DNA of 64,000 nucleotides from Zygnema circumcarinatum SAG 698-1b (GCA_037447605.1 CM074817.1:1488001-1552000), one strand, 5' to 3'; counted from the stretch's first letter, positions 13,197-53,759 are shown. The notes: a model not told the origin generated them from the letters alone. Numbers and translations: made by a program.

Positions 13197-13280
13197 CCGA
13201 CCATAGCTCAGTTGGTAGAGCGGAGGACTGTAGTGTAAACCGCCATCCTTAGGTCACTGGTTCGAATCCGGTTGGTCGGA
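13197..13280 (+). tRNA. tRNA-Tyr(GUA) with an 11-nt intron (13234-13244)
   Basis: CCGACCATAGCTCAGTTGGTAGAGCGGAGGACTGTAG|TGTAAACCGCC|ATCCTTAGGTCACTGGTTCGAATCCGGTTGGTCGGA gives a 73-nt mature body matching the plant cytosolic tRNA-Tyr pattern. The intron sits at the canonical 37/38 position, A and B boxes are intact, and a T-run terminator follows about 12 nt downstream. Confidence 0.97.
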
Positions 13281-28385: not shown

Positions 28386-31115
28386 TCAGCTGCACAATGT
28401 ACTCGTGAGGGGAACACAGATCTTTAGCCCCACCGTCAAGGCTCTCTTTGTGCATGGGAAACGGTTCAGCTTCCGGAAACTGACCGTTTTGGTGAAGCAT
28501 TTAGACAAACTGGAACATGAATCGCCTTTTTTCACGGTGTAAGATTTGCTCGCCTTGCATTCTGCAGCGGCTCCAAGATCGCCGGCTTCCAGACACACCT
28601 GCAGCAAGGCGAGGGCAGACGCAATTCCTGGTCACAGTCTAGAACACAATTGTTTCTTTCTGCGTCCTCCTCCGCCGCAAAGGCCGACACTTAATCACTT
28701 AATCTACGCCAAACAAATGCAAAGAAACGAAATTTGTTCAAAAAATGCAAACAAACATGGAGTCATGCCCTCCTACGTCCCTACTTTGACCATTGACAAA
28801 GTACCTGCTGGCCAATGGCAGAGCTGCCGCTAGTGGAGAGCATGAGCTTGCCGCAGTACACCCCGGGATTGAGCGTGTAAAACTTCCAAATGCTTCCCGC
28901 AAGATAGTTGCTTATGATAGAGAAGCAAGTTTCGTCCGGCTGGACATCATAAGGCTTCGTGCAGGGGCCCGGATAGACAGGGGAGCCCCTCTGAATGCAG
29001 ACCTGCAGAAACATCCAAACTCACACTTCAGATTCGACGCTTTTCAAAACATGCACCACGTTTGGGACTGTACATGAGTTTACGTGAATAATTTCCGTTA
29101 TTCCTTATCGTGTCCCCTTGGTTACGTAGTCAACAAAGTTTACGCAATTCCATTTTTCAGCGTAGGTAGTACAACTGAACAAATGGTCAATCACAAGAAG
29201 TAGTCGTCCAGGTCATTGTGCAGATCACCTGTACTATACATTTCTATAACATAGGGCTCATGTAGATTAGAGTTTTGTAGTGTTCTTTTCTTCTCATAAG
29301 GATTGATTCTTGTGGTAGTAGGGGTTTGACCCCTTCCAAGTTCACTAACTGTACCTGCTGGAACGGCTGAAGCCGCGAGCAGTCAAAGTCTGGATTGGGA
29401 GACCCGGGGCCATATATAGAGGGAACTTTGAAATGTGTTGCGATTGACTCACACGTATCATCCTGAAGAAAGAAAAAGGTAGGAAAGTCGAATTTCGACT
29501 GCGACGTCAAAAGTTTGCCAGCAGCTGACTCGGAGGACATTTGCAGGGAGGACCTTGAACAGTTAAAAATGGGGTCCCAAGGCACAGAGGCTGACCTCAT
29601 TGACAGCGTAAACCAAAGAGCAATTTTTGAAATTGGTGACATTCACCACCGTATCTCCCGGCAAGGGCAAACCGCAATTCAGATTCTGTGAAGTGGATCA
29701 AAGATTGTGGCACGAATGCAGAAAACGTGAGTTCAATGGCCTCATAGGAGGGGAGCAAAAGACCACCACAGCTTACTCCATTCCGCAAACATGACTACAT
29801 GAGTTACAGAAATTGAGATAAAACTAAGGGAAGTCACCGTTCGCCAGAATTGAGTAGTATCTTGCTGACCTGGTTTTGGGCTTGGAATTCTGTCTTGCTG
29901 ACGCCATACATGTTGTAGATGTCGTAGCAACTCATGTTGGTGCCGGTCGGCACCGAAAAGGTTTTTGGCCCATTTGCCAATGTAGCTGGAAAAACGATAA
30001 TTGCAGCCTTAGAAATGAGCTAGAGAAGAAGTGCAGATTTCACCTCGTTCGAGTATATCCCTATCATTGATGTATTCAAAGCGAAGGCCAAGTATGATTT
30101 GCATAGCTTCTAATAGCAAGTCATCACAGAATAAGGTCATGTTTGACTCGAAACCGTATTTGGAGCACTCAGATATCTCCTTTAATACTTAGAACCCCTG
30201 CTGACACTAGTATGAACAAAACTCCTCATATGCAGCTACTTCATACTACTTCTTTTTCTTACTTATTTTTCTTCTTCTTACTTCTACTTTCTTTTTTTTC
30301 TACTTCATTCAGGTTTTCGCTGCCTGCTTTGTGCCCCCACCTGGCACGCAGGTGAGCGAGCCATCAGGAGAGTCCGGGGCATAGCCGAAGGGGCAAGCGC
30401 ACACGTATGTGCCCATAGGCGAGGCCGCATTCAGGCATGTGCCCACACCGCAGGGGTTGCGGGCAGCAAAGGTGCAGGGGGAGACTGCCCCGAAAAAAAA
30501 AAACAAAAAAACGAAAAAAATCGTTCGTTAAAAAGTATTCAAAGACTTTGTAATGAGTTTAAGAAGTGCAGGGGGAGACTGCCCAGAAATAAATTTAAAA
30601 AAAATATCGTTCGATGAAAAGTATTCAAAGAGTTTGTAATGAGTTCAGGAATTGCAAGATTTCAGGTCGAAGCATTGAACAATGTTTGGCTTTTTACTTA
30701 GATTTGAAAAGTTCTTGTGTGTTGAAAAATCATGGTTGAAAAAATAGTTATCAGAGTGCGCATACAAAGCGGTGGAACAGTTGGCAAACTAAAGGAGGGG
30801 ATAACGCAAACAAGAGAAGCCATTGTTTGCTTCTCATCCGCTAGCAGTCTTTGGCTTTCCATCTCACATTACAAATCGTAAAGATCTGCTCGATGAAGCA
30901 AAAGATCAGATTAGTCAAACGGCAAACTAACTTACTGGGTGCGCATGTTTGGGAGTTGTCAGTGTTGTTCACAGCCACGAATCCTGTGCGACATCGACAC
31001 AAATTTGTGTTTCCGGAAGGAATGCATAGACCATTTCCGCAGGGGTTCATGGCTCCAGGGCCACTCCCACTCAGAACAACAGTTGCATAGCTGCTATAGA
31101 AGCAAGGATCATTGC
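28386..31115 (-). CDS. Mosaic gene: two EGF-like domains and four Cys-rich LysM domains
   Basis: EGF: [23 protein letters not shown] and [26 protein letters not shown]. LysM: [74 protein letters not shown], and a divergent first copy. Confidence 0.85.
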
Positions 31116-34100
31116 CTGCATCCGACCGACCACAAAAAGACACACATAACATTCTCGCTTGCTATCGTGAGCTCATTGAATATGACCTTAAACTTGTTAT
31201 CATCACTAGCCGAGAAGTTAGAGGAGCTCGTCTTCTGCGATTTGAGGATGCGTGACAAGGAAGAACACGTGTAAACGTTTGTTTCGTCGTCTCTATTTTT
31301 AATTAAAAAAGTCAAAACTTGTGAGAGGATATTCACTCACTTAAAGGCTTCACTACCGGCATGAGAGCCGGAAGACTGTTAATTCCGCATATCCCATAAC
31401 CGGCGGATATTTTGAGCCGCATGTAGCCCTGTTCGCCCCAATTTCGACCCCACGAGTTGCGGATGATCCAAAAGGGTGGATCCGCGCTCAAGTCGTATCC
31501 GACCACCACCACGCTGTGATCCACTCCGTTGGAAAAGCACTCGTCATCGTCAAACACTCCCTGCAGCACATCGTATCTCAATTCTGAAAGCAATGAGTGA
31601 TAGAAGGAAAATGACTCAAATTTTTCGTATGTAACATGCAGCATAAGTTATAGTGGCGCCAAATCCTGAGTGCTGAGTGGCTGTGGGAAGGAGGAAATGG
31701 GGCTAAAGCTCTTATCATGATCCAAATAAACGCATATACAGAAAGTCTTCACGTGAGTGCTTACATAAAACCTCCTTCCTGAAGAGGCACGCTATGCAGA
31801 AAATGTCCAACGATTACAAGATTGCAAGGCTATAAATTTGTTTATGGCTTTACTCCGTTGTAATTGATGAAGTTGGGACTGCTCGCTTCAATATTCACAA
31901 TGGCCGGTTGCTGCTGCAGAATGAGCAATAACCCCAACCAGCCGTTGAAGGCTACTTGCTCAAACGATGTGATTTTGAACGTGTTATCACCCTGTAAGCG
32001 ACCCACTCATATTGAATCTGAGATCTCTAAGATAATCAGTTTTAACCATAAAAATGTGCCTTGAAGATAAAATGTTCTTTACAACATTTGAAACAAAGCC
32101 AGTTCTCAATAAAACACACCAAACCCTAATCATCTCTGAAACCTTTTCAGGAAACTTGGAAACAAACTCGGCTCTTTTCTGATTAGCATCAGAGGCACGC
32201 CAAAAATCCCGGACCAAACTTCTATGATGATCTCTGAGTCAAAAACCTATCCGACAATTCAATGGCATCATTTGCTATCTACTTGCCTGCACACAGCTCC
32301 CTTGTCCTGTGAAGTTCGAGTATAAAATAAGGCTTTTGTTGGCGGCATAGTCAAGAGCTTCTTGGGGCCATCCCCCCCCCTCGCAGGTCTTGCCGGAGGG
32401 AGAGCAGGTCAGGACCTGCTGCTCTGCCAGCTGCGGGAGAGGAATCGATCCACCATTGGCAATGAAAATTGCGCTTTCAATGGCAGATATTGGAGCAAAA
32501 ATCCAACAGGTTCCTGCACATAATCCACGTCAGAATAAGACTTCTGATCATTGCAGATGCGGTAAGACCTAAGGTTTGCGTGCAGGTTTACAGAGTGCGT
32601 TTTGTATGGCGAAACGGTTCACGAATGTTTGCTTATTCGTTCGTTTGTTCGTTTTCCAGCTTTCCCAATCGTCTTCTGCCATGCCATCTTCAATGGAAGC
32701 AGCTAAAATAAAAAGAGAGAAAATATTAGAAGCAAAGGAACGAACGAACGAACGAACGAACGCTTGACTTTCAAGTGGTCAAGAAGGAGGGGGGTAATTA
32801 CTGCAGAGAGTCTGATCCTTGATTCCTTGCACGGCTCCCTCTTCAGTCCAGTTCCAAGAAATTGCGACCTGCCAGGATGACTTGCCGCTCTTCCTCCTCA
32901 AATATCCCGTCGTCGCGTATCGGAAGAAACGGTTCAAATATGAGGACTTTTGGATTGGTAGACTCGAGTTTAGGCCAAACCCTCGTCCCCCTACACTTTA
33001 CATAGAAATGTTGTTAACTGAGATCATGATGCACAATATGCATAACGTGATCATGTTGGGTTTTTCTCACTGTGACTATCTCTCCAGCAAAAGAGACAAA
33101 CGTAGATGCTCAACATTGCGGGCAACTTCAGTCACAAACCTGATTCAGCTCCTTCAGACCACAGGATACTAAAAAAAAGCCACAAGCCATGTCCAGAGCA
33201 GAACTAATAATAACAAGAAGAGATTTGAGAATCTCACCAAAAGTGCAAGTGTATGCATCTGCAGAGTTGTCATAGCCTGCATCACAAGCGCAAGTTGGCC
33301 GGCTTCCATTGAAAAAACAGGCCCCATTGCCCCCACATGCACCCTGAGGCTGGCTCGCATTGCAGAAGAAATTGCATGTGGCCGCATCTCTTTGGTCGCT
33401 GCAGGTATCGTTTGAAAAGCAGTTCGTTTCAATGCCAGTGCAGTCCCTTTCCTGGCCGTTCACGGTGATGGAGAATTCTTCCGAAAAGTAGTTGTTGTCG
33501 AAGTAGAAAGCGACGTCTTCAAGTAATCCAAAGTCAAACACCAGTGGTCCTGCGAGAAGGTTGTCTGCTAGCGACCTGCAGAAAGTAGGGTATCTGCTTG
33601 CTTCAGATCACAATGATTCTTTGGGGAGGAGCTACTTAGAGAATATTGGCCGTCTCTTTGTTGTGGTGGGGTTTTTTTTTTTTCTGGTCTGCTAGCTGCT
33701 GTTTGCGAAGGTATGTGAAAGTTGAAGAGTGAAAGACAAGTATCTGCTTCAAAACTGATGGTTTCTTCTTGCTTCCGCCTTGGCCAACACACTAATCCGT
33801 TATCCATGGATTTGCATTCAGAAAAGCACAAAGTTCAGTTCGCCCACATCTGTGTTATGGACTGGAGCCCTCCAAAGGTCGATGGAATATTGCCGGTCAG
33901 TTGATTGTTGCTCAAAATCCTGCCACACGAGAGATACCCATCTCAATTTGGGGTCTCTAGTTGGCCTTTCATTAAATGGTCGAGGTATCCAAGCACATAC
34001 AGATTCAGAACGAAGCTGTTTTCAAGTTCAAGGGAAGTGGTTTTTATTAATATGAATCGTTTCATTTCCGCCACATTTCATTTTCCTTCCGCATCTTTAT

Positions 34101-37100
34101 GTTTGCTGTCGTAGAGCCGTTAGGGAGTTTGGAACGTGATAGGGTCACATACAATTGGCTTCGTACACAATGACTCACAGAATTTGAAGGGCTCTGAGGT
34201 AGCCAATTGACGCAGGAATTGGACCGCTTAGCATGTTGTCGGCAACATTTCTGTACGACCGACAAGCAGCAACTTCAAGCATGAACCATATTCCAAGCGG
34301 ACCACTGCTCAAGTGTAAGATTTTTATAACAAAGAAAACTACAAACCAGGATTTTTTTCTAGCTGATATAGGTCCATTTTTTATTAGGAGAAATGTTTAC
34401 ATATTTTAGCTCTGACACTTCCACAAGCTTAAAAAATGTTTATCAACTATCCCGTGCCTATGTAAGAATTAAAAGATCATTTGGGTGCTATGACCGAGAT
34501 TCTGATTGCTCGGAAACATAGTTGAATCAGCAGTCAGAAGAACTTTTGCTATCGTCCTTCTTCTAATGCAGTCGGTCCGAAAGCCGCTTGAACACACTTC
34601 ACAAATGCTGCTTATAAGGATTTTCATTTTCCAACTACTAAAATATCCTTCCCACAAACCGATTGCTGCAACTAAGACGCAAGTGACTTAGATTGTACCA
34701 TTTGGAGACACGTACTGTCTGTCTCCGTTTTCCCGCAACGTGCACGAAGTATTTCTACAGTGTTGAACTTCTTTACGCATATGTCTACGATGACAGATTA
34801 CAAGTGGATCACAAGTCGGACCAGTGGATCGGCAACCATTGGACAACCACTGGATGGCAATGGGTGTCCCATGGTTCGCAACCATTCAACCAATGGTTGC
34901 CAATCATTTGCACCCACTGGTTCGCAACCAGTCGAGTGGTTGGTCTATTGGTCCGACCTGTTGAGTGGAAGTGTTTTAGCAAGCGTCGATCTGAACTTGT
35001 ATGCTTTCCCGTTTATACAGAATCCAGCGATCAGGAATCACTGGCACTTACAGTTCTTGAAGAGAGGTCAGGTTGCGAAAGGCTGAGGGGAGTCCACCCG
35101 TCAGCTTATTATCTGACAAAATTCTGCGCATCATCCAATGTTAGCAAACCAATTATTTTCAAAAGTTCCTAGAAGTATCTGACAAAATTCTGCGCATCAT
35201 CCAATGTTAGCAAACCAATCATTTTAAAAAGTTTCTAGAAGTATCTGAAAAAATTCAGCGCATCATCCATTGTAAGCAAACCAATCATTTTAAAAAGTTT
35301 CTAGAAGTATCTGACAAAATTCTGCGCATCATCCATTGTAAGCAGACTAATCATTTTCAAAAGTTTCTAGGATTATCTGACAAAATTCTGCGCATCATCC
35401 AATGTTAGCTAGCCAATCATTTTAAGACGTTTCTACAAGTATCTGACAAAATTCTGCGCATCATCCATTGTAAGTAAACCAATCATTTTAAAACGTTTCT
35501 AGAAGTATCTGACAAAATTCTGCGCATCATCCAATGTTAGCAAACCAATCATTTTAAAAAGTTTCTACAAGTATCTGACAAAATTCTGCGCATCATCCAT
35601 TGTAAGCAAACCAATCATTTTGAAAAGTTTCTGAACGAAAGCGAATATACGACTGCAATTTATACTATCAGCACAGGGGAAAAAAAGGTGGTCGAACTAG
35701 CAAAGCCATGGCTTTCTCCAAGTGCAGGTTAGGAGTATTTAGGATCTTTAGGGTTTTTAGTACTTAGGGTTTCCTTCGGCTTTTAGGGTTTTAGAGGCAT
35801 AGCAGATGATCCTAAGAGAGAGGGAAGGAACCATACAGTCTCTTTAACTTTTGAAGTCGACCAATGCTGTCAGGAATGATGCCCATAAAATTGTTGTTCG
35901 ACAAATCCCTGAATCATTTCAAACAACGGAGTATGTGACCTAAGAAACGAATATTCGACATAGAACAAAATAGAAACATCACAAAGACTTTAGATCTCCC
36001 GACAATAATAGGTGTTACAGATGCAATGATCTGCCTGTACGGGTTTCGCATTTCTGGGTTGTACATTGTTCAGAAGTGAGTGCAGGGTCTGATCGAAGTG
36101 GGGCTCCATTGACTGGTGATAGGATTCGTCAAGATTTAATTAACCCGTCATTCTTTTCCATTTATCAACGGAAGTCAAACTCACAATTCCTCCAACGTTG
36201 CTAGGCTGCCAATGGAGGGCGAAATGCTGCCATTCAGTTGGCTTCCACTCAACTTTCTGCCAACACAGCCACTTGCCCTTCAGTTCGCCAAATTGGTGAT
36301 CTTCAACTAGAAGGCAATGCACATTAGTTATTTACATTCAACCACAGGTATTCATTCTCCGTTGAGTATAGATTGATGATTACAAAAATAGCAAATTATA
36401 ATTAGAAAGTGACTCTATTGAGAAAGAGGCTGTCACGGTCTACAACGACTACAAGGATAAAGAGCGATCCGCAACCAATCCTCCGTGGTGCCACGACCGG
36501 AAAACCACTAAATGGAAACTAAGGAAGCAGCTGCATCTGACCTAAAAAATATTTTGATGCAAAAAACGTTATAACTATTTCAATCATAGGACTGCGAGAG
36601 CAAGTGATTCAAGACATCCATCACAGAAAAATGTGAAAGGGGAAATGCAAGATGCTCACATTTTGGTTATTACTTTGGGTGAACCTGTGCAGAATACGCC
36701 CCACCAGCTGCATACGGGATCTTTAGAAGGGTCCCAATTCTTGAGATACTTTTGAGGATTCGTGATGGCCATCTTGAACGCCAAAAGAATGACGGCTGCA
36801 TCATGGCGTTCTCCCAACAATTCAACAGAAAATATGTCTCATCGTCAATTACTTGAGCTTGCTCTCACCATGATCCCACCCGTGCTGCTCGAAAATTCAC
36901 GGAATTGTAAAATCGGCAGGCCGGCGTTTGCAAAGCAGATTCCAGCACCTTCCAACGATTATGGAAAGACTCTTTCAGAGCTGGACTCCACTCACTAAAA
37001 AGAGGTAAAATGGGTTCAGTTACAGTATTTGCCCACAGTCCCAAATACAAGTCAAAAATATGCAATCAGAGTGAAACTACTCCGTGTCCCCATTGCGAGT

Positions 37101-40100
37101 GTCGTTTAGGTCAGCCACGAGAAAAATGAATATTCATGCGGCGATCACCAAAACTCATGCACTCTCACTTGCACCTTGAGCAGCAAAGTATACAAAGAGC
37201 TGACTTTGCCCGTACTATTGCCATGTCTCAACAATGCCTGGAAGCCCCACGGCACATGCGGCTTGTGCTCAGAAGACTTGTTTCTTCATGCGCACCGCAG
37301 CTATTTTCAAAGTTAAAATGTTAGAATCGGGCAAGGTTCTCAGCTGTACTTGACAATATCATTCGCTATAAAACTGACACTTCTATGGACAGATCAATAA
37401 AATCTGAAAGAGACGGAGAAGTGTATCTTCCCTATCTAGTCCTAAATTGAAACACTTCGTTTTGTATGGTGATTCATTATTCGTTATCGTTAGCGTGCAA
37501 TGTTACTATTACTTTTAGCGTGCAATGTAAGCCTTTCAAATAAAAAGATCGAAAGGTAAAGGTGAGGAGGAATGAAGCATAGAAACTTTGTTGATGAGTC
37601 TTATAATAGGGGTAGTCAGACATTGACCATCGCCAAATCAATTAAGCAAGCCTGTCGGGCGAATTAAGCATTGGCTAGATACGCATTTCGGTACGGCTGT
37701 TTACGGCGGAGCCGCGGATCCCGACCCGGAATTACTTTGACTTTTAGTACAGTACTGTATACTGTACTGAATTCGGGAATTTAGTACGGCCATGGTCAAT
37801 GTCTGACTCCCCCTGATAGTGTATCGAAAGCAAGAAAGGGTTTTGGTTGAAATCATGAGACCAGCCGCGACATGCATATATGTGTCCATTACCTTCTGGA
37901 GAAAGTGGCGGCGGCGGTGGCCGTCGTGGAGGGGGTCGTGGTGGCGGGGGTCGAGGCCGCGGCGGAGGGGGGCGAGGAAGGCGAGGGGGGGGTGGAGAAG
38001 ACTCTGCGAGAGAGCACAAGGAGCACACAAAATAGCTCACAACAATCGCCAATTTCTGAGAAAAGCACACTAACTTTCTTGTCTCAGAATTGACAAGCGT
38101 TTTCTTGCAACAGCAACTCCAATCGGAACCGTTTGTTTCCCTGAATTGGACCATTAGACATGTTAAGAAAACATGAGGCTTATTTTTTTCCGTTTAAAAT
38201 GGGGAATGTAGAGCTAAGAAAATAGTTAAGTAACTAAGTTGAAAGAAGCGTTCAGAATCCTCAATCATTGCAGCCACTACCTCCTCAAGCAAAAATGGAC
38301 ACTCAAACTAAAGAAGCTGTGGTGACTTACTTCTGCGTATGTATGTGTGAGCAGAGCTACTCTCTGTGGGAGACATTATTGAAGATTTCAGCCAACATTG
38401 GAACTGGCCTCCGTCTCCGTAACCGTTTCCTTGGGTTATAGAAAAACCGACGCATTGGCACAAGCTTGTACAAAGCTGAATGCATCCGTCCGCAGAAAGA
38501 ACAAAAGCGCTGCCAATGTCATTCAAAATAGCAACTTTATTTGGAACATAGTCGTAAGTCGCAGCTGGACCTCCAACACATGTTCCTGCGCAACCGAACA
38601 TAGTGAAGGAGCGACGCACGTCCGCATATCAGAACATTGGTAAAATAAAAAAAAAATCAAATCATCAATCAATCAATTCATCATCAATCAAAATCAATCA
38701 AATCAATCAATCAATCAATAATCTTGTTCACTTTTTACCTCCCTTGCGACATACAATCTGATCAACTCCTTTTGACAAAGAGAGGAGATGAAGCACTGTT
38801 TCTACCGCCTCTAACAGGATTGGGTTGAAGTAGAGTGGACTACTTGCGGAGAATTCAAAACGTACCTTCGGAGCTTCTAAAAACTTTCACCTCAGTTGAA
38901 GTGAGGGGTTCGCCGCTGCTGAGGTACACCCAGACGAATTTTCCGCGTAGAGCCGAGCACGTCTTGACGAAGGGAAAGCCGATGCTCGTGTTTGAGTACT
39001 TGAAGACGTTACCGGGGTCGCACTCCTGGTTTCCCCCCCCATTGAATGTGGAGTTGCTATCTCCCACCCACACAGCCACTCCGTTCATCCGCTCTTGACA
39101 ACAATCTGTCCGGCCGTACAGCATGACCTTTCCCACAGCCACGGTCGCGAGCAGGTCCACTTTCCACCACTGCGGTGGACCGTTAAGCGTATGCGAGCAT
39201 GTAAATCCTTCCGTAGAGCAGCCGCCATCACCTAAGGAGCCGTCCACCGCTTTCAGTGCTGAAAATTTTAGGAGAGTGCTGGACTGAAAAGCGGGTCTGT
39301 TGAAAGCCAAATCGCCTGCCATTCCCATTACCCCACATTTGATTCCAATGGTGTAAGTGCAGATTACACTAAAGCATATAAACCAGTAGGTTTAAGCCTG
39401 GCGGAATATGGACATGTTCGCAATAGCCACAGGACCAAACAGCAAAGTATGTCGGAGTTTCGTATACTTCACGAGCCAGTCTTGTCATTGTTTTTTTTGT
39501 GCTGACTGTATCGTTGGCCTATTCCTTTTCCTTTCTTCACCTCCTTATAATCATCTGTGTTGTCTACGAGAGCCAATCCTCTGATAACTAGACCAGCTTT
39601 TCTGCATCGTTTTTGGTTCCCGAATGCGACTATGGGGTTCCAGACGTACCTTCGACCGCTCCTAAAACCGCTCCAAAAACCTTCACTTCGCATAAAACGA
39701 GCGGCCAGCCGCTGAGAACCACCCAAACGAATCGTCCAGCCAACAGGGAGCACTTCTTGACGAAGGGAAAGCCTCTGCTTGTGTCGGAGTAGAAAAAGAC
39801 GTTACTGGGGTCGCACTCCTCGTTCCCGTCGGCGTTCCATGTGGAGTCGTTGTTGCCGATCCACACCGTCACTCCGTTCATCCACTCTGAACAGCAGTCT
39901 GTACGGCCCCACAGCTCGACCGAGTCCACCCTCGCACGCGCCAGCAGGTCCACCCTCCACCAATTGGAGGGAGCACCGAGCGTGTGTGAGCATGTAAACG
40001 TGAAGTAGTCGCCGCCTCCATCAGAGCCGTCCACCGCCCTCCCAGCGACACCACCCCACGCCTCGCTGGACTGCAAGGCAGGTTTCTGCAGAGCCAAATT

Positions 40101-43100
40101 TTCTGCAATGCGGATTCGTGCAAAAAGAGAGATGCAAAAGAAACTTGGCATCGGTAAACCATTGTTGCCTCGTTTGGAAAGAGAAATAGTCATACAATCA
40201 CACGCATCCTATTCATGGGAATACTAAGTCCAAGACGCTCACGGCCTAACCTTTTCTTAGATACTTTTTTGTACCAGTCGGCTAAGCATGATGTTTGACG
40301 ACCAACAGCACTACAAACCGAATTACTGTTTCGTAAGGAACGATGGTTGCATTAGCTCACATTCTCTTGCAAACCGAGATGCAGGTAGGAGTGGGAAAAA
40401 GAGCGGAAGGCGTACCTCTAGGGCCTCCAAAGACCTTCACTTCACACAAAGTGAGGTAGTCGCCGCTGCTGAGGTACACCCAGACGAATTTTCCGCTTAT
40501 AGACGAGCACTTCTTGACGAAGGGAAAGCCGATGCTCGTGTTTGAGTACTTGAAGACGTTACCGGGGTCGCACTCCTGGTTTCCCCCCCCATTGAATGTG
40601 GAGTTGCTATCTCCCACCCACACAGCCACTCCGTTCATCTCCTCTTGGTTAGCAACTGTCTGGCCGTACAGCATGACCGAGTCCACAGTCGTGGTGGTGA
40701 GCAGGTCCACTTTCCACCACTGCGGTTCACCGTTAAGCGTTTGTGAGCATGTACGAGTGTCTGCCGTGTAGTAATATCCATCACCATAGTAGTTGTCCAC
40801 AGCGTTTTGTGCCACAAGAATAGTGCTGGACTGAAAAGCTGGCTTCTTGAGAGCCAAATTGCCTGCAATACCCATTATGCCAAAATTGATTCCAATAAAT
40901 GTAAAATGCCTATTGGGCTTGGCTTGGCGGAAAGGAAAAATGCTCTGGTAACAAAGCTAGAGAACCGAATAAAAACGATCTCGGAGTCTGGTGTACTTCA
41001 CGATTCAGTCTTTGCATAACTTTCTGTGCTGACTGTATTGTATACGTATTTGTTCATGATTCATGTTCATGTGAGCAGCTTTATTATCTGGCTGAATCAA
41101 TCCTTTGATGGTTGGACCAGCTTTTCTGCACCTGTAGTAAATAGAAACCTTGAGCTAGCTTGGAGCACATACCCATGTCTCGTCGAATGTACAATATTCT
41201 GTTCGTTGTAGTCCTCCATTCTGAGACAGGACGAGTGTTGAGCTTTTTCCAGCACGAAAAGCTGCCATCACTTCTTGGAGGATATTCGATCACAAAAGCG
41301 ATGCAGCTGCAAGCGCTGTTGCAGGAAGCTTCGCACTCCGTCGCTGACGTTACAGTCAAGTTGGACAGATCAAAATCTGCTGACTCCAGATTATCATATC
41401 GGTCATATTCGTTCAAGAGTCCGGCACAATGGTAAGAATCACGCTCTACAAAACATAGCAGAAAGGTAATTGGTTAGAGGGTGGAAATGGTCGCAATCTC
41501 AGTCAGTCCAAAAAGATCATCAAATCACCAATCTCAACTTAAGAATCTCAAGCTTTTCAAAAGGCACACTTTTTCAATCCAGCGAAAAATCTTGCGGTTC
41601 GTTTTCTTTTCACCCTCGTCGTCTCTCCCTCACTCGACCCCCGCCTTCCCGTGTTTTCTATAACTATGTTCTTTAACAGTTTCTTGCAATGCCCACTCAG
41701 ATTAAACGGTTCATTTCCCTTGATTGACCAGCTTATGCTGTGAAAATAGTGAGGCTCCATTTTGGTTTTTTGTTCCAAACTGAAAGCAAAGGTTTCTTCG
41801 TGAGTCTATTTCTCAATCTGGAGCTAAGATTGACCCGAACTTAGAAGATGTTGATGACTTACTTTCGCGTACATACATGTCACCAAATGCAACGCTCTCT
41901 AAGTTGGCAATATCATACTTTAGCCAACAATTGAGTCCGCCATCCCCATCACTCGTACGAACTCCGAGGCATTCGCAATAGCTGGTGCACTGAGCAATGC
42001 AATCTTCAACGGATGACACAAGGACATATTTGAAGTCGTACCCCCAATTTTCACTGTTAGCCAAATAGCGGAACGTATCTTTTAGGCCTGCACATTCTCC
42101 TGCACAGCCAGGATCGCGTGTACAAATCAGTATCTCAGGTTAAACCGTTCGGGATCGTAATTCTTGGAAGAGGTGGAGATGCAATTGGTGAGGAAGGCAG
42201 CAAGACTACACAAGCCGACACGTCAGCTCATAAAAAGTCTCACAAGTTTTCTTGTTTTCACTATGAACCATCAGGAATAGCCGTGGCTACGTTCAACCAC
42301 CGTAGCAACTTACAAAATTGAAAGAAGAGAAATATTAGATTGGACTGTTTGCTTTCTTCAGTTGGAGTCTCTATACATGTGAATCTTAAGGCATCATGAT
42401 ACTTCTATCCAGCAGCAAATGTTTAAAACACTTCAACATGGCAGACACTCTCTTCGCGCAGCAATACTAACTCAAAAGATGTGGGGACTTACTTGTCCGT
42501 ATGTATGTGTGAACAACGGTACTAGTCGTGAGAGGAGCTATTGCATATTTCGAAAAACAGGTGAACTGGCTCCCGTTTCCGTAACCTGCCCCTTGGCTTA
42601 CGACGAATCCAACACACTGGCAAAGCCCTGCGCAGAACTGAGCGCATTCCGCCACAGATGAGACATAGGAGAGACCGATGTCATTCCCCAAAGCATCTGT
42701 ACCTGCTGCATAGTCAAACGTATCTCCAAGGCCTGGACATTCTCCTGCAGAGGCAAAAAACGAGGAAGGAGCGAGTGCAAGTATGCAGATCAGTATCTCG
42801 GACACATCTCAATTGACTTTAATAGTGGCTTATGTCTCCCACTGCACTTTAAAGGCGGAGTTGGACGGTGCAGAATGGAATAGGACTACAAGCAGAATAG
42901 CCAGCTTATGAAAAAGCAGGCAATTTTTTTCTGCTGTGAAAGAACACAGCAGTAATAATGTGAAATCAACGCAGATTGAAGTGGTTATATTTCCTTAGTT
43001 GAATCGTGGGGTACAAGTTGAACTCGAGTTACTCTTCCAACTTCAACCTATCCCGCACATTCGTCATGACTCCCTCCTCACGCAGTCACAGTCTTCTGCC

Positions 43101-43476
43101 CTTCCACTCTCCATTCTCTCTTTTTTTCAATTCAAGATTTATCCCTGCTTCCCCTCTCCCATTTTCCTTCTCCACTCCCCCTCTCTCCTCCTTATCTTCC
43201 CGCATTTCCTCACGACCTCCCACTCCTACCACTTTCTCAATTCTTCCTGAACCACACTCTCTTTCTCCTCGACTCTCCTTTCTAGCAATAAGGCACAGGC
43301 TACCGCCCCCACTCTCAGCGTCCATGTCCGCGAAGCCCCCCTATTTTCCTCTCCTCGTCCCATCCCCCTCTCCCTCCTCTCTCTTTCTCACACTCCTGCC
43401 CTACCGACCCACCTTGCGCCCGTCCACAAGTCACAGCGAGGATGACCAGAGCTGCAAAAGCGAACCACTGCGCCAT
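28386..43476 (-). CDS. Secreted mosaic protein, 1708 aa, 26 exons: SP-PAN x3-F-type lectin x3-PAN-Pro-rich-LRRNT-LRR x5-EGF-papain C1A-EGF x2-LysM x4
   Basis: Exons, 5' to 3' on minus: 43413-43476, 42493-42744, 41863-42099, 41173-41445, 40416-40862, 39650-40102, 38866-39315, 38331-38585, 37893-38003, 36660-36795, 36185-36256, 35837-35908, 34179-34250, 33848-33919, 33238-33575, 32802-32990, 32287-32513, 31854-31991, 31341-31560, 30936-31115, 30341-30484, 29870-29985, 29596-29685, 29355-29462, 28805-29002, 28386-28598. Sum is 5127 nt, all phases are compatible and there is no internal stop. The start context is GCCGCCATGG. All introns are GT-AG except one GC-AG. Confidence 0.8.
31341..32990 (-). 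CDS. Mosaic gene: papain-family (C1A) cysteine protease domain
   Basis: [32 protein letters not shown] (oxyanion Gln, catalytic Cys), [32 protein letters not shown] (His), [20 protein letters not shown] (Asn), GICGIN. Confidence 0.92.
33238..36795 (-). CDS. Mosaic gene: plant-type LRR N-cap, LRR repeats and EGF-like domain
   Basis: [37 protein letters not shown] is an LRRNT_2-type cap. Four 72-nt phase-2 exons read [72 protein letters not shown] and [24 protein letters not shown]. Then [11 protein letters not shown] and the [25 protein letters not shown]. Confidence 0.88.
34811..34961. mobile_element. Putative MITE with 13-bp terminal inverted repeats, in an intron of the mosaic gene
   Basis: ACAAGTCGGACCA...TGGTCCGACCTGT (1 mismatch) with internal AACCA/TGGTT/CCAATGG palindromic units. 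Same family as 45471-45706, in opposite orientation. No target-site duplication found. Confidence 0.6.
35110..35633. repeat. 66-bp minisatellite, 8 copies, intronic
   Basis: TATCTGACAAAATTCTGCGCATCATCC.. units start at 35110, 35176, 35242, 35308, 35374, 35440, 35506 and 35572. Confidence 0.95.
37893..38585 (-). CDS. Mosaic gene: fourth PAN domain and Pro/Arg-rich (SPPPP) linker exon
   Basis: [32 protein letters not shown] followed by [36 protein letters not shown]. Confidence 0.8.
38866..40862 (-). CDS. Mosaic gene: three F-type lectin (fucolectin, F5/8-C fold) domains
   Basis: NLAL.KPA.QSS..AVDG..CSHT..WW.VDL..V..V.L.GR.DCC.E..EVKVF. The copy at 38866-39315 has the exact H-x26-R-x-D-x4-R F-type motif ([35 protein letters not shown]). 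Confidence 0.88.
41173..42744 (-). CDS. Mosaic gene: three PAN/Apple-like domains, one per exon
   Basis: Pattern D(I/F/L)....(V/T)SS..EC...C...C.C..F......C..K in all three, e.g. [33 protein letters not shown]. Confidence 0.78.
43413..43476 (-). CDS. Mosaic gene exon 1: signal peptide [21 protein letters not shown]
   Basis: Strong start context, a hydrophobic core, small residues near the likely cleavage site, and a phase-1 GT donor. Not present in the ORF track. Confidence 0.8.
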
Positions 43477-43811
43477 GGCGGCAGGATCCTGCAAAACCTA
43501 AAAACGCCAAACCGAGCACCACAAGAGTCAATGCTACCGTACTTCAACTTTACGACAAAACCTTTTTTAAGTGCATTGCTCTTGGCCTCCCCACTTGGTT
43601 TACATACAGAATGAAGGGCACTAAACTTAACACATATCACCCCCTACCAGACTTCGCTTCCCACACTCCATTCCCCCCTTCAACAGCCTCCTCTCTCTCC
43701 CTCCGTCTTCCGCCGCTCGTCCATTTGCCTTCCCCTCGACGGCCCGCCCTTCATCTCTCCCCGCCTTCATGAATTCCGCGAGTTCCAAAATCCGCACAAC
43801 ATTCAGCGGCC

Positions 43812-43813
<2 letters not shown>

Positions 43814-43870
<57 letters not shown>
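43814..43870. repeat. (GA)n microsatellite upstream of the mosaic gene start
   Basis: Visible dinucleotide run. Confidence 0.95.
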
Positions 43871-43874
<4 letters not shown>

Positions 43875-45316
43875 CACTGCTCCTTTGTAGCAGAGGCAGG
43901 GCTTCTCCCACACACTAACTCACATATTGGACAACGATCCTCAGTACCTTCGACTCCCTCCTTTGATCGCGCAACGCCGCCATGCCTCAGCCGCCTCTAG
44001 CTTCGTGCCTCCCCTCCCCACGCTCTGTTTTCCTTCTGCCACACTCTCTCTCCTCCTACCTCCCCTCTCTCTTCCCTATCGCTCTCTCTCGTCCACTCCC
44101 ACTTCACCCTCCCTCCTTCCCATCCTCCCGCCCTCCCACCCTCTTTCCCTCCCTTTCTTCCTTTCTTTCCTTTCTTCTTCCCTCCCTCCCTCCCACCCAC
44201 CCTCCCGTCCTCTCCCTCTCCCCGCGCCCCTTTTTCTGCTCCTTGCGCCGCCCCGCCCCTGACTCGACAGCCGCCACGTCAGGAATTGTGCCATCGTGGC
44301 AGGCTCTGATTGGCCCGCGCTTGTCGCTATGTGACGCCTCTCAGTCGAGCGCGCTCGCAAGTGCGAAAGGTGAAGCTCTCGCATACGTACAACGGAAACG
44401 ATGATGTCAGCACGCGCGGGCTGCCCCCGTCCGGCCAAGAAAAGTTTTGTCGGTCCCCACAACGGACGATCTCAGAATCGACAAGACCGCACGGCACACT
44501 TTGAAGGTCCCCGCGCCGTCCAATAGGGCCAAACTCTGCACAAAGCGACGACGAAAGGCAAGCAAAGGAGCCAAAAAAGCAAACACGTGATCATGGTTCC
44601 CAATCGCGCGCCGCCACGTAACAACTAGGACCAATCGCTGCCCCGCGCGGTGCCGCGCTGGCTCGCGGCTGACGACGCGCGGTGACCGCCGGTCGAGGTC
44701 GCTGCTCGCAGACAATTTGGCGGCGGCACCGGAAAGAAAAAAAGAAATCCGTACGGTAGCAGCTGGCCACGTCGGACAACTTAAATTCGGACACGTGGTA
44801 ATAGATGATTGAATGTTGGCCGATCGGAATCTGGGTCACAGATTCGATCTGAAATCACGCTCGTTCTTGAGATATTCGGCGGATCTGCGTGCGTCAGTAC
44901 AGGCTGGCGGAAGGAAATCTACAGAAAACGATAACGCAATCTTCTCGCTAGATTTCCCTCAAACCCCAAACACGACCTTAACGGATCATTCCACGTCGGC
45001 TGGATTCTCCCATTGGTCGATCCACTCGCGGACCGGGGACGATCCGGGTCGCAATCGCAGGAGTGCGCAGGTTTCGTCCGTACAATGGCCCGCCTCAGGG
45101 CGTCTCTGTCCACGTCAGCACTCTGCATCCACGTGGCAGGAGTTCGCGGCAATCCGTTCTATGCCCGTGCGATGAAACAGTCACATGTCGCAGTCAAAAA
45201 TGTTGAACGCTAATGACCGTCACATGGACAGTGCACATGTCGAAAATTTCCACAGAGAACATGTGGCCATGTTTGTCGTAGAACTGAGGAAGGGGAGCCC
45301 GGCCCGCCACAGAGAG

Positions 45317-45423
45317 AGGGAGGGAGGGAGCGAGGGAGGGAGGGAGGGAGGGAGGGAGCGAGGGAGGGAGGGAGGGAGCGAGGGAGGGAGGGAGGGAGCG
45401 AGGGAGGGAGGGAGGGAGGGAGG
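45317..45423. repeat. (GAGG)n tetranucleotide array with periodic GAGC interruptions
   Basis: Visible tandem array. Confidence 0.9.
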
Positions 45424-45470
45424 GAATGGTGCAGAGCGAGTGGGGGCGCGCGGTGGAGGTGGCTGCCTTC

Positions 45471-45706
45471 ACAGGTCGGACCATTAGACGAACCATTTGA
45501 CTGGTTGCCAACCATTGGCGCCGGATCGCAACAACCATTCGAATGGTTCGGAACCAGTGGGTGCCAATGATTGGCAAACATTCGACTGGTTTGGAACCAT
45601 CGGAGCCAATGCTTGGCAACCATTCGACTGGTTGCCAACCAGTAGACGTCCAACCATTGCCATCCAATGGTTATCCAATGGTTGCCGATCCACTGGTCCG
45701 ACCTGT
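45471..45706. mobile_element. Putative MITE with perfect 13-bp terminal inverted repeats
   Basis: ACAGGTCGGACCA (45471-45483) / TGGTCCGACCTGT (45694-45706) with an internal palindromic CAACCA..TGGTTG array; homologous to 34811-34961. Confidence 0.65.
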
Positions 45707-46417: not shown

Positions 46418-49400
46418 TCACTCCTTGAGCTCAATGGCCACCTTGTGGATGCTCTTCAGCCAAATTAGGGTTTCCCGGAGCCCCTCTTTGAGACTCCTTG
46501 GACGGTAGCCAAGCTCAGCGCAGGTGGAGGGGCTGCTGTACGCCCAGTCGTGTTGGAACACTCTCACTGTCTGCATCCAACGGAGGAGGAGAAGCCAATC
46601 ATAATCATCCCTTCATCATAAACCAGCATGAGATAGCATACAGCGGGAAAAAGGAGAGGCTCATCGACTTGCTTTAAGATCAGATTTGCAACGGTACCAT
46701 TATCACACAATTACGAATTAGTGATTGACTAAATTTGATAAAGTAAGCAAATAGTGACGGATTTTTCGGTCATCGCAGGTGGTGATTAAGTGGCTGTTTA
46801 TGCACGACTGCAGGTTTTTCAAATCCATGAAAGCCTTAAAAAGTTCAGAAAGGAGGTTCAAATTCCTTCCCCATCTACTCCTGCCAACGGCAATCACACC
46901 AAACCTAGCATCCTCTTGGGATTCGAGACGAATAAAGAGCCATAGCTTGTAGATACATTACATTACAAATAAAGAGCGGTGACTGAATGTTTTGAAAGAT
47001 AGGATTTTGCGCACCTCATGCGTTATGGTGGGTTGTGGTCCCCCCAAATAAGCAATCAGCACAGACAGAAACCCTATAGAGCGAGCCACAACAAAGGGAA
47101 TATGAATGCTTGGAGGTGAAACTCCGGTCAATTCCTCCAAAGCCTTGAAGAAGTCCACAAAGGACCCGTTCTCTCCCACCAGCAAGTAGCGCTGCCCCGG
47201 TTTCCCCTTTTCCAATGCTGCTATGATGCCATCACATACGTCATCTACATAGACAAATGATGTCAACGATGTTCCTGCTCCGATGTATCCTGGGAAACGC
47301 CCCTTCAAGTGATCGCATATCTGGCAGAAGAAAACATACATTAGTAAATAATTAGTTTTAGCATTCTATACGTGGGAAGGGGATGGGGAGGGGGAAGAGG
47401 AGGGGGAAGGGGAGGGGGAGAGGGAGTGGGGGAAAGGGAAGGGGAGAGGGGGAGAAAGGGGAGGAGGGAGTTTGGAGGGGGGAGGGGGGGAGGGAGGAAG
47501 GGGGGAAGGGGGAAAGGGGGGGAGGAGAGGCTTTCATTTTTGCGTACTCAAGATAGTCACAGCCTCACGGAGAATAGTGTACGCCTGCTATGACTTTAAG
47601 GTCCATAGTGACGAGCTCCAAATGAGAAAAAAAAACTCACTATTTGGGGCAAGAGATTTCCAGAGGTAAGCTCTCCTGCTCCGTATATCACTCCCGGATA
47701 TACGGCCACAACGGGGAGGCCATCTTTGGCTGCGCGCTGAGCGATCCCATCACTCAACCACTTGGTGCGTTCATACTCTGTGCAGAAGTCCTTTCCTGCA
47801 TGGACCTAATCTCAATTCACAGTATATATCAGTCAGGCAAACATCAGACAATTACAAGGGATTCGCAACAATGCACATTCATAACCGAAGCGATAAATGG
47901 AGATCGGAATCCAGAAATGGAGATATTCTCATATGGTCATAGGTCATAGGGTTCCATGGAGGTGTGTCTGAAATGACAAGTATAGAGGGTTAGGGTTTAA
48001 CGAACCAGTATGCAGGAAGTCCCTGAGTGACGAACATTTTTACTTTAAAAATGAACACAAAAGCAAAAACGCACTCTAAACTAGTCGTAATCATCATCAT
48101 CAACAACCTTTACCTGCTCTTCATTCGCAACATAGCCGTCAGTAGGACCCAATGCAAAAAAGCTCGAAACGTGCACAAGACGCTTGAGGGAGGCCGTCCG
48201 GCGAAGAGCTTCAATCATGTTCTTCAGCCCTCCAACGTTCACCTTCCTCCCCGAATTGCATGCTGCCACGTGTCAAAAATGACAAACCCATGCGAACCCA
48301 TGCGAGCCTCTCTCTCCTCTCTCATATCTACTAGTCGCCAAAAATGGGTCTCCTTCCTTTTCCCTTATCTTGATGAATCTGCAATGCCTGCTCTTTACAA
48401 CTGGCATACAGTGCCAAGGAATATTTCCTGCATAGATAATGCCTAAAGGAAGGATGTGTTCTTAGGGGAGCTACAAACATACTCTTTCGAAGTCTTGAAC
48501 CTTTCGGGTCCATGCTTGCACTAAAGCTGCAGAGTGGATAGCCGCTTCGCAGTCAGCGCAAGCAGCCAAAACCTCTTCCATGTTGCAAACATCTCCCCAG
48601 ACCACCTCTACATTTGGAGGGAGCGCTCTCTTCTTGCGACTCTTCCGCACAAGCACTCTCACCTGAGCCCAAGCAATAATAATAATAATAAATACATAAA
48701 CGTAGGTATAGCAGCGGAGCAGGTTAAAGGGGTAGGGCTTGTACAATTGATACATCCATTATGAAATTACTCCTTCTCAAAAGTTGTGCTGGAACAGGGA
48801 AAGTGGTGAGTTTAGTGGTTGTGCCACAAAGCCTACGTCAACAACTTGATCGCTCTATTTCATAGAAAAATGTTTAAGCCTCACCTAGTTCTTCCTCCAA
48901 ACCAGACAGAATCCTTTTTAACTCAAACTCTATTTAACTGCATTTAAATATGTGCTTCATAATGCTATCCCTTGATGCGCAGTATTGGGATCCATGCTCA
49001 TTTGGGAGCAACTGCATTCTATAGGAAACGAAAGTCATAGACTGGCTGTGTGGAATTTTTGGAGTAAAAAACCGAAAGACCGTGTGTGATGTGCTTCTGT
49101 CATCGTTGAAAAGATTAGGGACCCAATTTTATCGGTACAACAATAAGAAACTTATTTAAGAAGAGAATCAATATGCTCATTCCGAACAAGTCCAGAAAAT
49201 GATGATTGGCTGAGAAAACAGAGTTGAGATTTGCTCTTGTTGGGGTCATACATTGAAAGACCAAGTTACAGAGTTGTGCTTATGATATCTGTGCTCGTTT
49301 TATTTTTATATCCTAGCCCAGCCTAAATAATCCTAATCCAATTTATTACATTTGTTCGCATAGAGATTTGTTGAAGACTTTCTGGGTCTCATTACGTTTT

Positions 49401-50163: not shown

Positions 50164-53759
<3,596 letters not shown>

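Follow-up and report, generated by a model that had tools for sequence, protein, structure and literature searches.

The lectin exons and the gene around them

Three tandem F-type lectin domains (FTL1, FTL2 and FTL3) are encoded on the minus strand at positions 38866-40862 of the window, which is the whole 64-kb stretch of DNA analysed here. A frame scan identified three open exon-sized frames in this interval, and their exon limits were set by sequence reading and by script. Each of them encodes a single domain, whose identity is given by sequence and, for FTL1 and FTL3, also by predicted fold. The tandem array proposed in the initial annotation was thus recovered, and its limits proved exact: FTL3 ends on base 38866 and FTL1 starts on base 40862. 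The three exons are each flanked by AG and GT borders, have lengths that are multiples of three and are in phase 1 at both ends. A tblastn search revealed no fourth copy elsewhere in the 64-kb window. The exons identified in and around the array are listed below in the direction of transcription.

43413-43476, minus strand: probable first exon with its ATG at 43476, resembling a signal peptide by eye, donor in phase 1
42493-42744, minus strand: PAN/apple exon 1, 252 nt, phase 1-1, Pfam PAN_4 under the cut-off, 50% identity to PAN4
41863-42099, minus strand: PAN/apple exon 2, 237 nt, phase 1-1, found by Pfam, sequence reading and tblastn
41173-41445, minus strand: PAN/apple exon 3, 273 nt, phase 1-1, Pfam PAN_2 score of 21.9 bits (cut-off 21.1)
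40416-40862, minus strand: FTL1 exon, 447 nt, phase 1-1, an F-type lectin fold whose pocket has been remodelled
39650-40102, minus strand: FTL2 exon, 453 nt, phase 1-1, with the framework that is nearest to canonical
38866-39315, minus strand: FTL3 exon, 450 nt, phase 1-1, full H-x26-RxDx4R motif and Cys-Cys pair
38331-38585, minus strand: PAN/apple exon 4, 255 nt, phase 1-1, immediately following FTL3, found by Pfam, sequence reading and tblastn
37893-38003, minus strand: proline-rich linker exon, 111 nt, phase 1-1
36659-36838, minus strand: downstream open frame with a plant-type LRR N-terminal domain, Pfam LRRNT_2, E 1.2e-9
31336-32529, minus strand: papain-family (C1) protease exons, Pfam Peptidase_C1, E 4.5e-10 and 1.4e-18
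28389-28631, minus strand: LysM exon, Pfam LysM, E 1.7e-7

As read from the exons, the head of the gene would comprise a predicted signal peptide, three PAN/apple domains, the three FTL domains, one further PAN domain and the proline-rich linker. Downstream of the head, the same strand carries exons of the LRR, papain, EGF and LysM types. Strand and phase continuity are the two grounds on which the FTL exons are placed, by inference, in one transcript with the LRR-papain-LysM exons. The putative mosaic protein would be about 1,700 residues long.

Fold and binding motifs of the three domains

F-type lectin modules are best known from fish and invertebrates. The database searches were run exon by exon rather than with a joined, spliced protein. 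In Pfam, FTL1, FTL2 and FTL3 all hit PF22633 with E values between 2e-13 and 9e-10, and two of them, FTL2 and FTL3, pass the PF00754 cut-off as well. When searched against the PDB with phmmer, they matched FBP32 (3cqo) with E values of 1.1e-23, 7e-33 and 3.5e-25, respectively. The corresponding values for the eel agglutinin 1k12 in the PDB sequence search are 1.1e-8, 8e-14 and 1.3e-11. The pneumococcal SpX fucose modules are also among the PDB matches and rank behind FBP32, at about E 1e-10 for FTL3. The similarity of the three domains to solved F-type lectins is far above chance. The AF2 model of FTL1 has a pLDDT of 84 and a TM of 0.80 to 1k12 in Foldseek, and that of FTL3 has a pLDDT of 75, with residues 19-37 of CDR1 uncertain. 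With these two models as queries, ranks 1-11 of the Foldseek search are all F-type lectins (TM up to 0.80). It might be argued that the exons encode generic galactose-binding modules of the discoidin/CBM32 type, since the Pfam matches carry the names F5_F8_type_C and NedA-like galactose-binding and CBM32 structures appear from rank 12 onward in the fold searches. However, every significant PDB sequence match and all 11 best structural matches are F-type lectins, and the family-specific H-x26-RxDCCxxR and h2DGx motifs are present in FTL2 and FTL3. We regard the CBM32 reading as very improbable; the three exons encode genuine F-type lectin domains with the FTP/fucolectin fold, a family that SMART lists as SM00607. 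We take these domains to be CBM47-like, the label which CAZy presumably gives to the bacterial fucose modules as well.

For comparison of the binding sites, the residues were mapped to the numbering of the Anguilla anguilla agglutinin (AAA) via alignments to 1k12. The roles of His52, Arg79, Arg86, Cys82-Cys83, Phe45/Tyr46 and the calcium motif h2DGx are taken from PMC5712786. The fucose motif H-x26-R-x-D-x4-(R/K) is complete in FTL3. FTL2 has all of it except the last residue, which is Trp, and FTL1 carries Q, Q, V and E at these positions. The initial annotation had described a graded loss of the His/Arg/Arg triad and the Cys-Cys pair across the array, and this loss is real in the alignment. 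The motif H-x26-RxD-x4-R given for FTL3 is found letter for letter. The strings given for FTL2 (H..RTDCCSEW, with the terminal Arg replaced by Trp) and for FTL1 (Q..QTVANQEE, with the Tyr-rich loop NYYGDGYYY) agree exactly. The pocket of FTL1 has thus changed from H to Q, R to Q, D to V, CC to AN and R to E, and its CDR1 loop is rich in Tyr. The calcium motif reads AVDGS in FTL2 and FTL3 and AVDNY in FTL1. In all three domains the Ser49 position is occupied by Thr and the Glu147 position by Glu. Members that deviate from the fucose motif are still accepted in the F-type lectin family (PMC5712786).

The cysteines also differ among the domains. FTL2 has the equivalents of all six residues of the Cys50-Cys146, Cys82-Cys83 and Cys108-Cys124 pairs. 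FTL1 lacks the Cys82-Cys83 pair and appears to have kept the two other structural disulfide pairs. FTL3 lacks the Cys146 equivalent, with LTSTEV in place of LxLCEV, and carries an additional Cys in CDR1, seven residues ahead of the Cys50 equivalent. [quoted passage not shown] The proposal that FTL3 is the one canonical fucose binder is too simple: its triad is complete, but it departs from the canonical pattern in the Cys146 equivalent, the aromatic pair and the extra cysteine in CDR1. Judged by sequence, none of the three domains is fully canonical, and FTL2 comes closest apart from the replacement of Arg86 by Trp. The fucose specificity of FTL3 is uncertain because the disulfide partner is lost, the 45/46 aromatic pair is missing and CDR1 is modelled with low confidence. 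By analogy with eel isoforms that are discussed in PMC5712786, a 6-OH sugar such as galactose is conceivable as a ligand of FTL3.

Proposed duplication, host and possible origin of the array

The three domains share 60-72% identity. In a tree with 164 database domains they form one clade (SH-aLRT 100), within which FTL1 and FTL3 group together (SH-aLRT 96). The single clade points to duplication within the lineage, with FTL1 and FTL3 as the youngest pair of the array. This pair shares a conversion-like tract at the following positions.

40512-40639, minus strand: tract in FTL1, 128 nt, MNGV...FVK, perfectly identical to 38962-39089 in FTL3
38962-39089, minus strand: partner tract in FTL3, 128 nt, with the same letters as 40512-40639 in FTL1

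The probability of an identical run of 128 nt is 1.4e-8 at the overall identity of the pair (0.83) and 1.6e-14 at the identity of the N-terminal half. The tract is best read as a product of gene conversion. Seven of the 13 replacements specific to FTL1 fall on the 11 motif positions (hypergeometric p 2.2e-6). In total, 13 replacements in FTL1 stand against 11 in FTL3 (relative-rate test, p 0.68), which indicates equal rates. The idea that FTL1 is a fast-decaying copy was dropped, since this test shows no overall acceleration. The dN/dS ratio between FTL1 and FTL3 is about 0.85, a value compatible with relaxed constraint on both domains.

The initial annotation referred to a plant-lineage gene. 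This holds in the broad sense, as judged from the introns, the LRRNT_2 domain downstream and a neighbouring USP exon nearest to Closterium, but the host is a streptophyte alga and not a land plant. The best matches of the USP exon come from three Closterium species, the top two with 58% identity over the conserved box. The host of the array is probably a zygnematophycean green alga of the genus Zygnema. The GC content of the FTL region is like that of its surroundings. Contamination was ruled out on three grounds: the gene has introns, its GC content is like that of the host, and a plant-type LRRNT_2 domain lies on the same strand.

In the literature, F-type lectins are described from animals, bacteria, viruses, some protists and chlorophyte algae, with none in higher plants. 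Their green-algal occurrence includes domains in Volvox and Chlorella (PMC5712786), a Chlamydomonas protein with LysM plus FTP (PMC6362431) and receptor kinases of chlorophytes that have F-lectin ectodomains (PMC12757656). The claim that the family is absent from land plants is unchallenged by an algal host, and F-type lectin domains of green algae had already been published. F-type lectins in the algae sister to land plants are not discussed in the searchable papers on the family. In the Zygnema genome preprint and its supplements (PMC9915684), F5_F8_type_C appears in orthogroup tables only and F-type lectins are not discussed. A large representative protein search yielded 4733 relatives, none above 47% identity and none near-identical; the 30 named ones are animal or unlabelled metagenome proteins, in a library that carries no taxonomy. 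An exact look-up returned no record of the two ORFs. A word search with the FTL3 exon gave one weak match, over a length range that leaves out multi-domain relatives. Among the 120 matches listed in a profile word search with P0064 and the three FTLs, a list swamped by bacterial relatives of P0064, none is from Viridiplantae.

Horizontal transfer of the FTL exons from bacteria or a giant virus, as opposed to an ancestral presence in the green lineage, appears unlikely to us. P0064, the database protein most nearly identical to FTL3 (47%), is a metagenomic three-domain protein with myxobacterial and acidobacterial relatives, the Cys-less LTSTEV of FTL3 resembles the bacterial LSLTEV/LSLAEV, and lateral transfer has been proposed for the family (PMC5712786). 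However, the per-domain top scores and the shortest tree paths of the FTLs lead to amphioxus and vertebrate domains and not to bacteria, and FTL1 and FTL2 have the eukaryote-type Cys50-Cys146 pair. A scan of viral contigs with the three-domain alignment found no relative, which counts against a giant-virus source; a scan of metagenome contigs with this alignment found none either. The exons are accompanied by spliceosomal introns and have a host-like GC content, so that any transfer would be ancient. The tree itself cannot decide between transfer and ancestral origin because the stem from the FTL clade to every database domain is long, with roughly 1.7 or more changes per column.

Nothing is overturned by the present array: the F-type domain was already known, as were its presence in green algae and the existence of degenerate copies within tandem arrays. 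With its introns and internal duplication, the F-lectin array of this zygnematophyte extends the known family to this algal group and fills a gap. If it was inherited vertically, F-type lectins were lost on the way to land plants. With a full triad, a triad ending in Trp and no triad on one scaffold, the array further provides a ready-made set of variants for tracing the residues that determine sugar specificity in this fold.

Proposed role and comparison with known systems

We propose, as the probable reading, that the three tandem F-type lectin domains belong to a lectin head at the N-terminus of a large, secreted zygnematophycean protein of mosaic build and act there as follows. The array would have grown by duplication of symmetric phase-1 exons. 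The His-Arg-Arg pocket of FTL3 and, less surely, the His-Arg-Trp pocket of FTL2 may hold a terminal sugar whose 4-OH is axial. A candidate ligand would be alpha-L-fucose or a similar sugar, for example in zygnematophyte extracellular polysaccharide, which is fucose-rich (PMC10762512), or in microbial glycans. FTL1 would have kept the scaffold and lost canonical fucose binding; it may have gained a new ligand via its Tyr-rich loop or serve as a structural spacer. In this way the array could lend the LRR-protease-LysM body multivalent glycan attachment or recognition.

A less probable, though not negligible, explanation is that FTL1 and perhaps FTL2 are decayed, non-binding spacers between the PAN head and FTL3, with neutral drift of the motif after inactivation. 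In FTL1 all sugar-contacting residues are replaced and the calcium motif is broken, and with binding gone the pocket sites would drift under a still-constrained fold. Its motif sites changed 7-8 times against 3.5 of 11 expected at the neutral dS rate, a modest excess (p 0.03 to 0.007), and non-binding F-lectin domains exist in animals (PMC5712786). Against decay, the model of FTL1 is more confident than that of FTL3, both structural disulfides appear to be kept and the overall replacement rate is not above that of FTL3. The loop is also strikingly rich in Tyr, as many sugar-stacking surfaces may be. A further scenario, which we regard as unlikely and offer as speculation, places F-type lectins in the toolkit of the ancestor of Zygnematophyceae and land plants. 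They would have been shuffled as phase-1 exons into secreted lectin-LRR-protease-LysM surveillance proteins and lost on the land-plant stem, and the FTL1 pocket would have been remodelled, either under selection or through micro-conversion with a diverged paralogue as donor, for a non-fucose ligand held by the Tyr loop. If this were true, one protein would read several glycans at once.

The preferred reading, a lectin head on a mosaic protein, can be compared with several known systems. The bacterial fucose modules of S. pneumoniae SpX and lectinolysin share the fold and the triad, with E 1e-10 to FTL3, and are also targeting modules on an effector domain, but they lack the Cys50-Cys146 disulfide, and their fusion partners are cytolysins or glycosidases. 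The Anguilla anguilla agglutinin (1K12) has a common fold with the FTLs (TM 0.66 to 0.80). It shares the spacing of His52, Arg79 and Arg86 and the Cys82-Cys83 pair with FTL3, and h2DGx with FTL2 and FTL3. 1K12 is a single-domain trimeric lectin, and FTL1 has none of its contact residues. Loss of the triad in tandem F-lectins has a known precedent in animals: in the F-lectin repeats of Drosophila CG9095 and the oyster bindins the basic triad is replaced in some domains and the pocket loops are variable (PMC5712786). These animal proteins act in development and sperm-egg recognition, and orthology to the FTLs is not implied. The green-algal FTP proteins (Chlamydomonas, Volvox, Chlorella and the chlorophyte receptor kinases) combine F-type lectin with LysM or other glycan-binding modules (PMC6362431, PMC5712786, PMC12757656). 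The likeness to them is drawn from these published descriptions, in which a PAN-FTL-PAN head is not described. The top PDB match of all three domains is MsaFBP32 of striped bass (3CQO; E 1e-23 to 7e-33, about 30% identity). It has tandem FTLDs, one without Cys82-Cys83, so that non-equivalent sites in one chain are already known. MsaFBP32 is a vertebrate two-domain serum lectin with the basic triad in both domains, whereas here three domains lie in a mosaic and the triad is progressively lost.

Exons and fold of the F-type lectin domains

The minus strand of the window contains three open frames of exon size at 38.8-40.9 kb. Each of them is preceded by a pyrimidine-rich tract with AG and followed by GTACG. 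Sequence reading and a script check delimited them as follows:

40416-40862, minus strand: FTL1, first F-type lectin exon, 447 nt
39650-40102, minus strand: FTL2, second F-type lectin exon, 453 nt
38866-39315, minus strand: FTL3, third F-type lectin exon, 450 nt

All three lengths are divisible by three, both ends of each exon are in phase 1, and the separating introns are 313 and 334 nt long. The limits of the initial annotation, 38866 and 40862, coincide exactly with the outer exon boundaries. No fourth copy was found within the window by tblastn.

The three domains match PF22633 in the Pfam search; for FTL2 and FTL3 the PF00754 score is above its cut-off as well. Against all PDB sequences, the striped-bass tandem F-type lectin FBP32 (3CQO) was matched by FTL3, FTL2 and FTL1 with E values of 3.5e-25, 7e-33 and 1.1e-23, respectively. 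Significant matches were confined to F-type lectins, namely FBP32, eel agglutinin, pneumococcal SpX modules and lectinolysin. AlphaFold2 models of FTL3 (pLDDT 75, CDR1 residues 19-37 uncertain) and FTL1 (pLDDT 84) were built from a 21-row alignment. In Foldseek, F-type lectins fill ranks 1 to 11 for both models (TM up to 0.80 for FTL1), and CBM32 and discoidin folds rank only below them. Identification as generic discoidin modules was rejected, since the PDB sequence matches and Foldseek ranks 1 to 11 are F-type lectins. On the Pfam, PDB and Foldseek matches, FTL1, FTL2 and FTL3 are F-type lectin domains, in tandem as initially annotated.

Pocket states and history of the copies

In F-type lectins (numbering of Anguilla anguilla agglutinin, 1K12), His52, Arg79 and Arg86 contact the axial 4-OH, the Cys82-Cys83 pair sits under C1-C2 of the sugar, and Phe45/Tyr46 serve the methyl pocket. 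The h2DGx motif is the calcium motif, and Cys50-Cys146 is the disulfide (PMC5712786). The alignment bore out the motif strings quoted earlier for each domain.

Motif states of the three domains (alignment; positions 45/46 from residue alignments to solved structures)
FTL3: triad H, 26 residues, RTDCCQER; calcium motif AVDGS; Cys82-Cys83 present; Cys50-Cys146 without partner (LTSTEV); 45/46 Thr/Glu
FTL2: triad H and R retained, RTDCCSEW (Trp in place of Arg86); calcium motif AVDGS; Cys82-Cys83 present; Cys50-Cys146 present; 45/46 Tyr-Phe
FTL1: triad region Q..QTVANQEE; calcium motif AVDNY; Cys82-Cys83 lost; Cys50-Cys146 present; 45/46 non-aromatic; CDR1 NYYGDGYYY

FTL3 had been suggested as the one canonical fucose binder. 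Its triad is indeed complete, but it lacks the Cys50-Cys146 partner and the aromatic residues at 45/46, and it carries a new Cys seven residues N-terminal of the Cys50 equivalent. By alignment, none of the domains is fully canonical; the framework is closest in FTL2 and the triad in FTL3. The initial observation is confirmed and its interpretation partly supported.

In a tree that includes 164 database proteins, each represented by its best domain, FTL1-3 form a single clade (SH-aLRT 100) with FTL1 and FTL3 as sisters (SH-aLRT 96). The stem is long: every other domain lies at a distance of about 1.7 changes per column or more. FTL1 and FTL3 share 72% protein identity. Positions 40512-40639 of FTL1 and 38962-39089 of FTL3 form a 128-nt run without differences; outside it, identity is 74% in the 5′ half. 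Such a run would arise by chance with a probability of at most about 1e-8, whether the overall or the N-half identity of the pair is used, and we read it as a putative gene-conversion tract. Homology between FTL1 and FTL3 also covers the last ~35 nt of the upstream introns, which fits an exon duplicated along with its flanks.

The dN/dS ratio (Nei-Gojobori) is ~0.85 between FTL1 and FTL3 and ~0.4 between either and FTL2. Polarised by FTL2, the two branches do not differ in rate, with 13 replacements for FTL1 and 11 for FTL3 (p 0.68). Of the 13 FTL1 changes, seven lie at the 11 motif positions defined from the literature (one expected, p 2.2e-6). Against a neutral expectation of ~3.5 motif-site changes after binding loss, 7-8 are observed (p 0.03 to 0.007), a modest excess. 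As far as sequence goes, these counts show an FTL1 pocket altered in a targeted manner with the scaffold retained. This may reflect selection for a new ligand or release of constraint, which the data cannot separate.

Gene context and host lineage

All searches were run exon by exon. On the same strand, the lectin exons are preceded by a short exon from ATG 43476 with a signal-peptide-like sequence and, after it, by three PAN/apple exons. On the downstream side are a fourth PAN exon and a linker exon rich in proline; the further modules there are LRRNT_2 of plant type, papain C1, EGF-like and LysM exons. Every delimited exon (first exon, four PAN, three FTL, linker) is in phase 1. Strand and phase suggest that the FTL and downstream LRR/papain/EGF/LysM exons may form one transcript.

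PAN exons 1 (42493-42744) and 4 (38331-38585) share 50% protein identity, and their likeness runs a few codons past the donor into the following introns (SKSPHLLS versus SKSPQLL). PAN exons 1 and 2 have the last ~30 nt of their upstream introns in common. Because these likenesses extend into introns, it appears that the PAN exons were duplicated along with their flanks, as were the FTL exons.

Further features of the window are:

13197-13280, plus strand: one tRNA gene (Rfam RF00005, 60.9 bits)
43000-45700, between the lectin gene start and the next gene: GC-rich (up to 58%), densely filled with short (CT)n runs and with low-complexity frames (Pro/Ser/Leu and Gly/Arg/Glu); probably remnants of repeats or transposons
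46961-47365, minus strand: exon resembling an NAD-dependent epimerase/dehydratase-type protein (GxxYLLVGENGSF...), by eye apparently of the adjoining upstream gene
50164-53756: 3.6-kb pure dinucleotide microsatellite, 355 bp of (TA)n directly joined to 3.2 kb of (TC)n at 99% purity, which accounts for the extreme GC and AT skew at 50-54 kb
55034-56737, plus strand: long open frame with a ubiquitin-specific protease (UCH) Cys box in its last ~230 residues

The best database matches of the UCH exon, 15 kb from the lectin array, are three Closterium species, with 58% identity to the top two in the conserved box; the window is therefore assigned to Zygnematophyceae. The designation as a plant-lineage gene holds in that the host belongs to the algae that are sister to land plants, but not in the sense of a land plant.

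Proposed function and known relatives

We propose that the FTL domains would form a secreted, multivalent glycan-binding head positioning the LRR, protease and LysM body. FTL3, and perhaps FTL2, would attach to fucose-like terminal sugars, either in the mucilage of the alga itself or on microbes; a re-specified or silent role is proposed for FTL1. Zygnematophyte extracellular polysaccharides are fucose-rich (PMC10762512), which makes the alga's own polysaccharide a plausible ligand.

An exhaustive search (E up to 1e-3) returned 4733 related cluster representatives, whose identity to FTL3 does not exceed 47%. The highest-identity match, a metagenomic three-domain protein, falls in a bacterial group rich in myxobacteria. 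Among 30 relatives looked up, the named ones are from amphioxus, molluscs, fish, amphibians and reptiles; the others are unlabelled metagenome proteins. Neither the window's own protein nor close paralogues occur in this collection, so this lectin lineage is unrepresented there. Contig scans found no relatives in viral and metagenome contigs. A literature search found no published discussion of F-type lectins of Zygnematophyceae, and the Zygnema genome preprint has F5_F8_type_C in orthogroup tables only.

According to a review that summarises the survey by Bishnoi et al., F-type lectin domains are present in the green algae Volvox and Chlorella as well as in diatoms, cryptomonads, brown algae and algal viruses, but absent from higher plants (PMC5712786). 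Chlamydomonas has a LysM plus FTP protein, and peptidase C1A plus lectin combinations are not retained by vascular plants (PMC6362431). Chlorophyte receptor kinases contain F-lectin modules (PMC12757656). To this known domain family, the present array adds a set of three pockets in different states within one array, along with a putative conversion tract.
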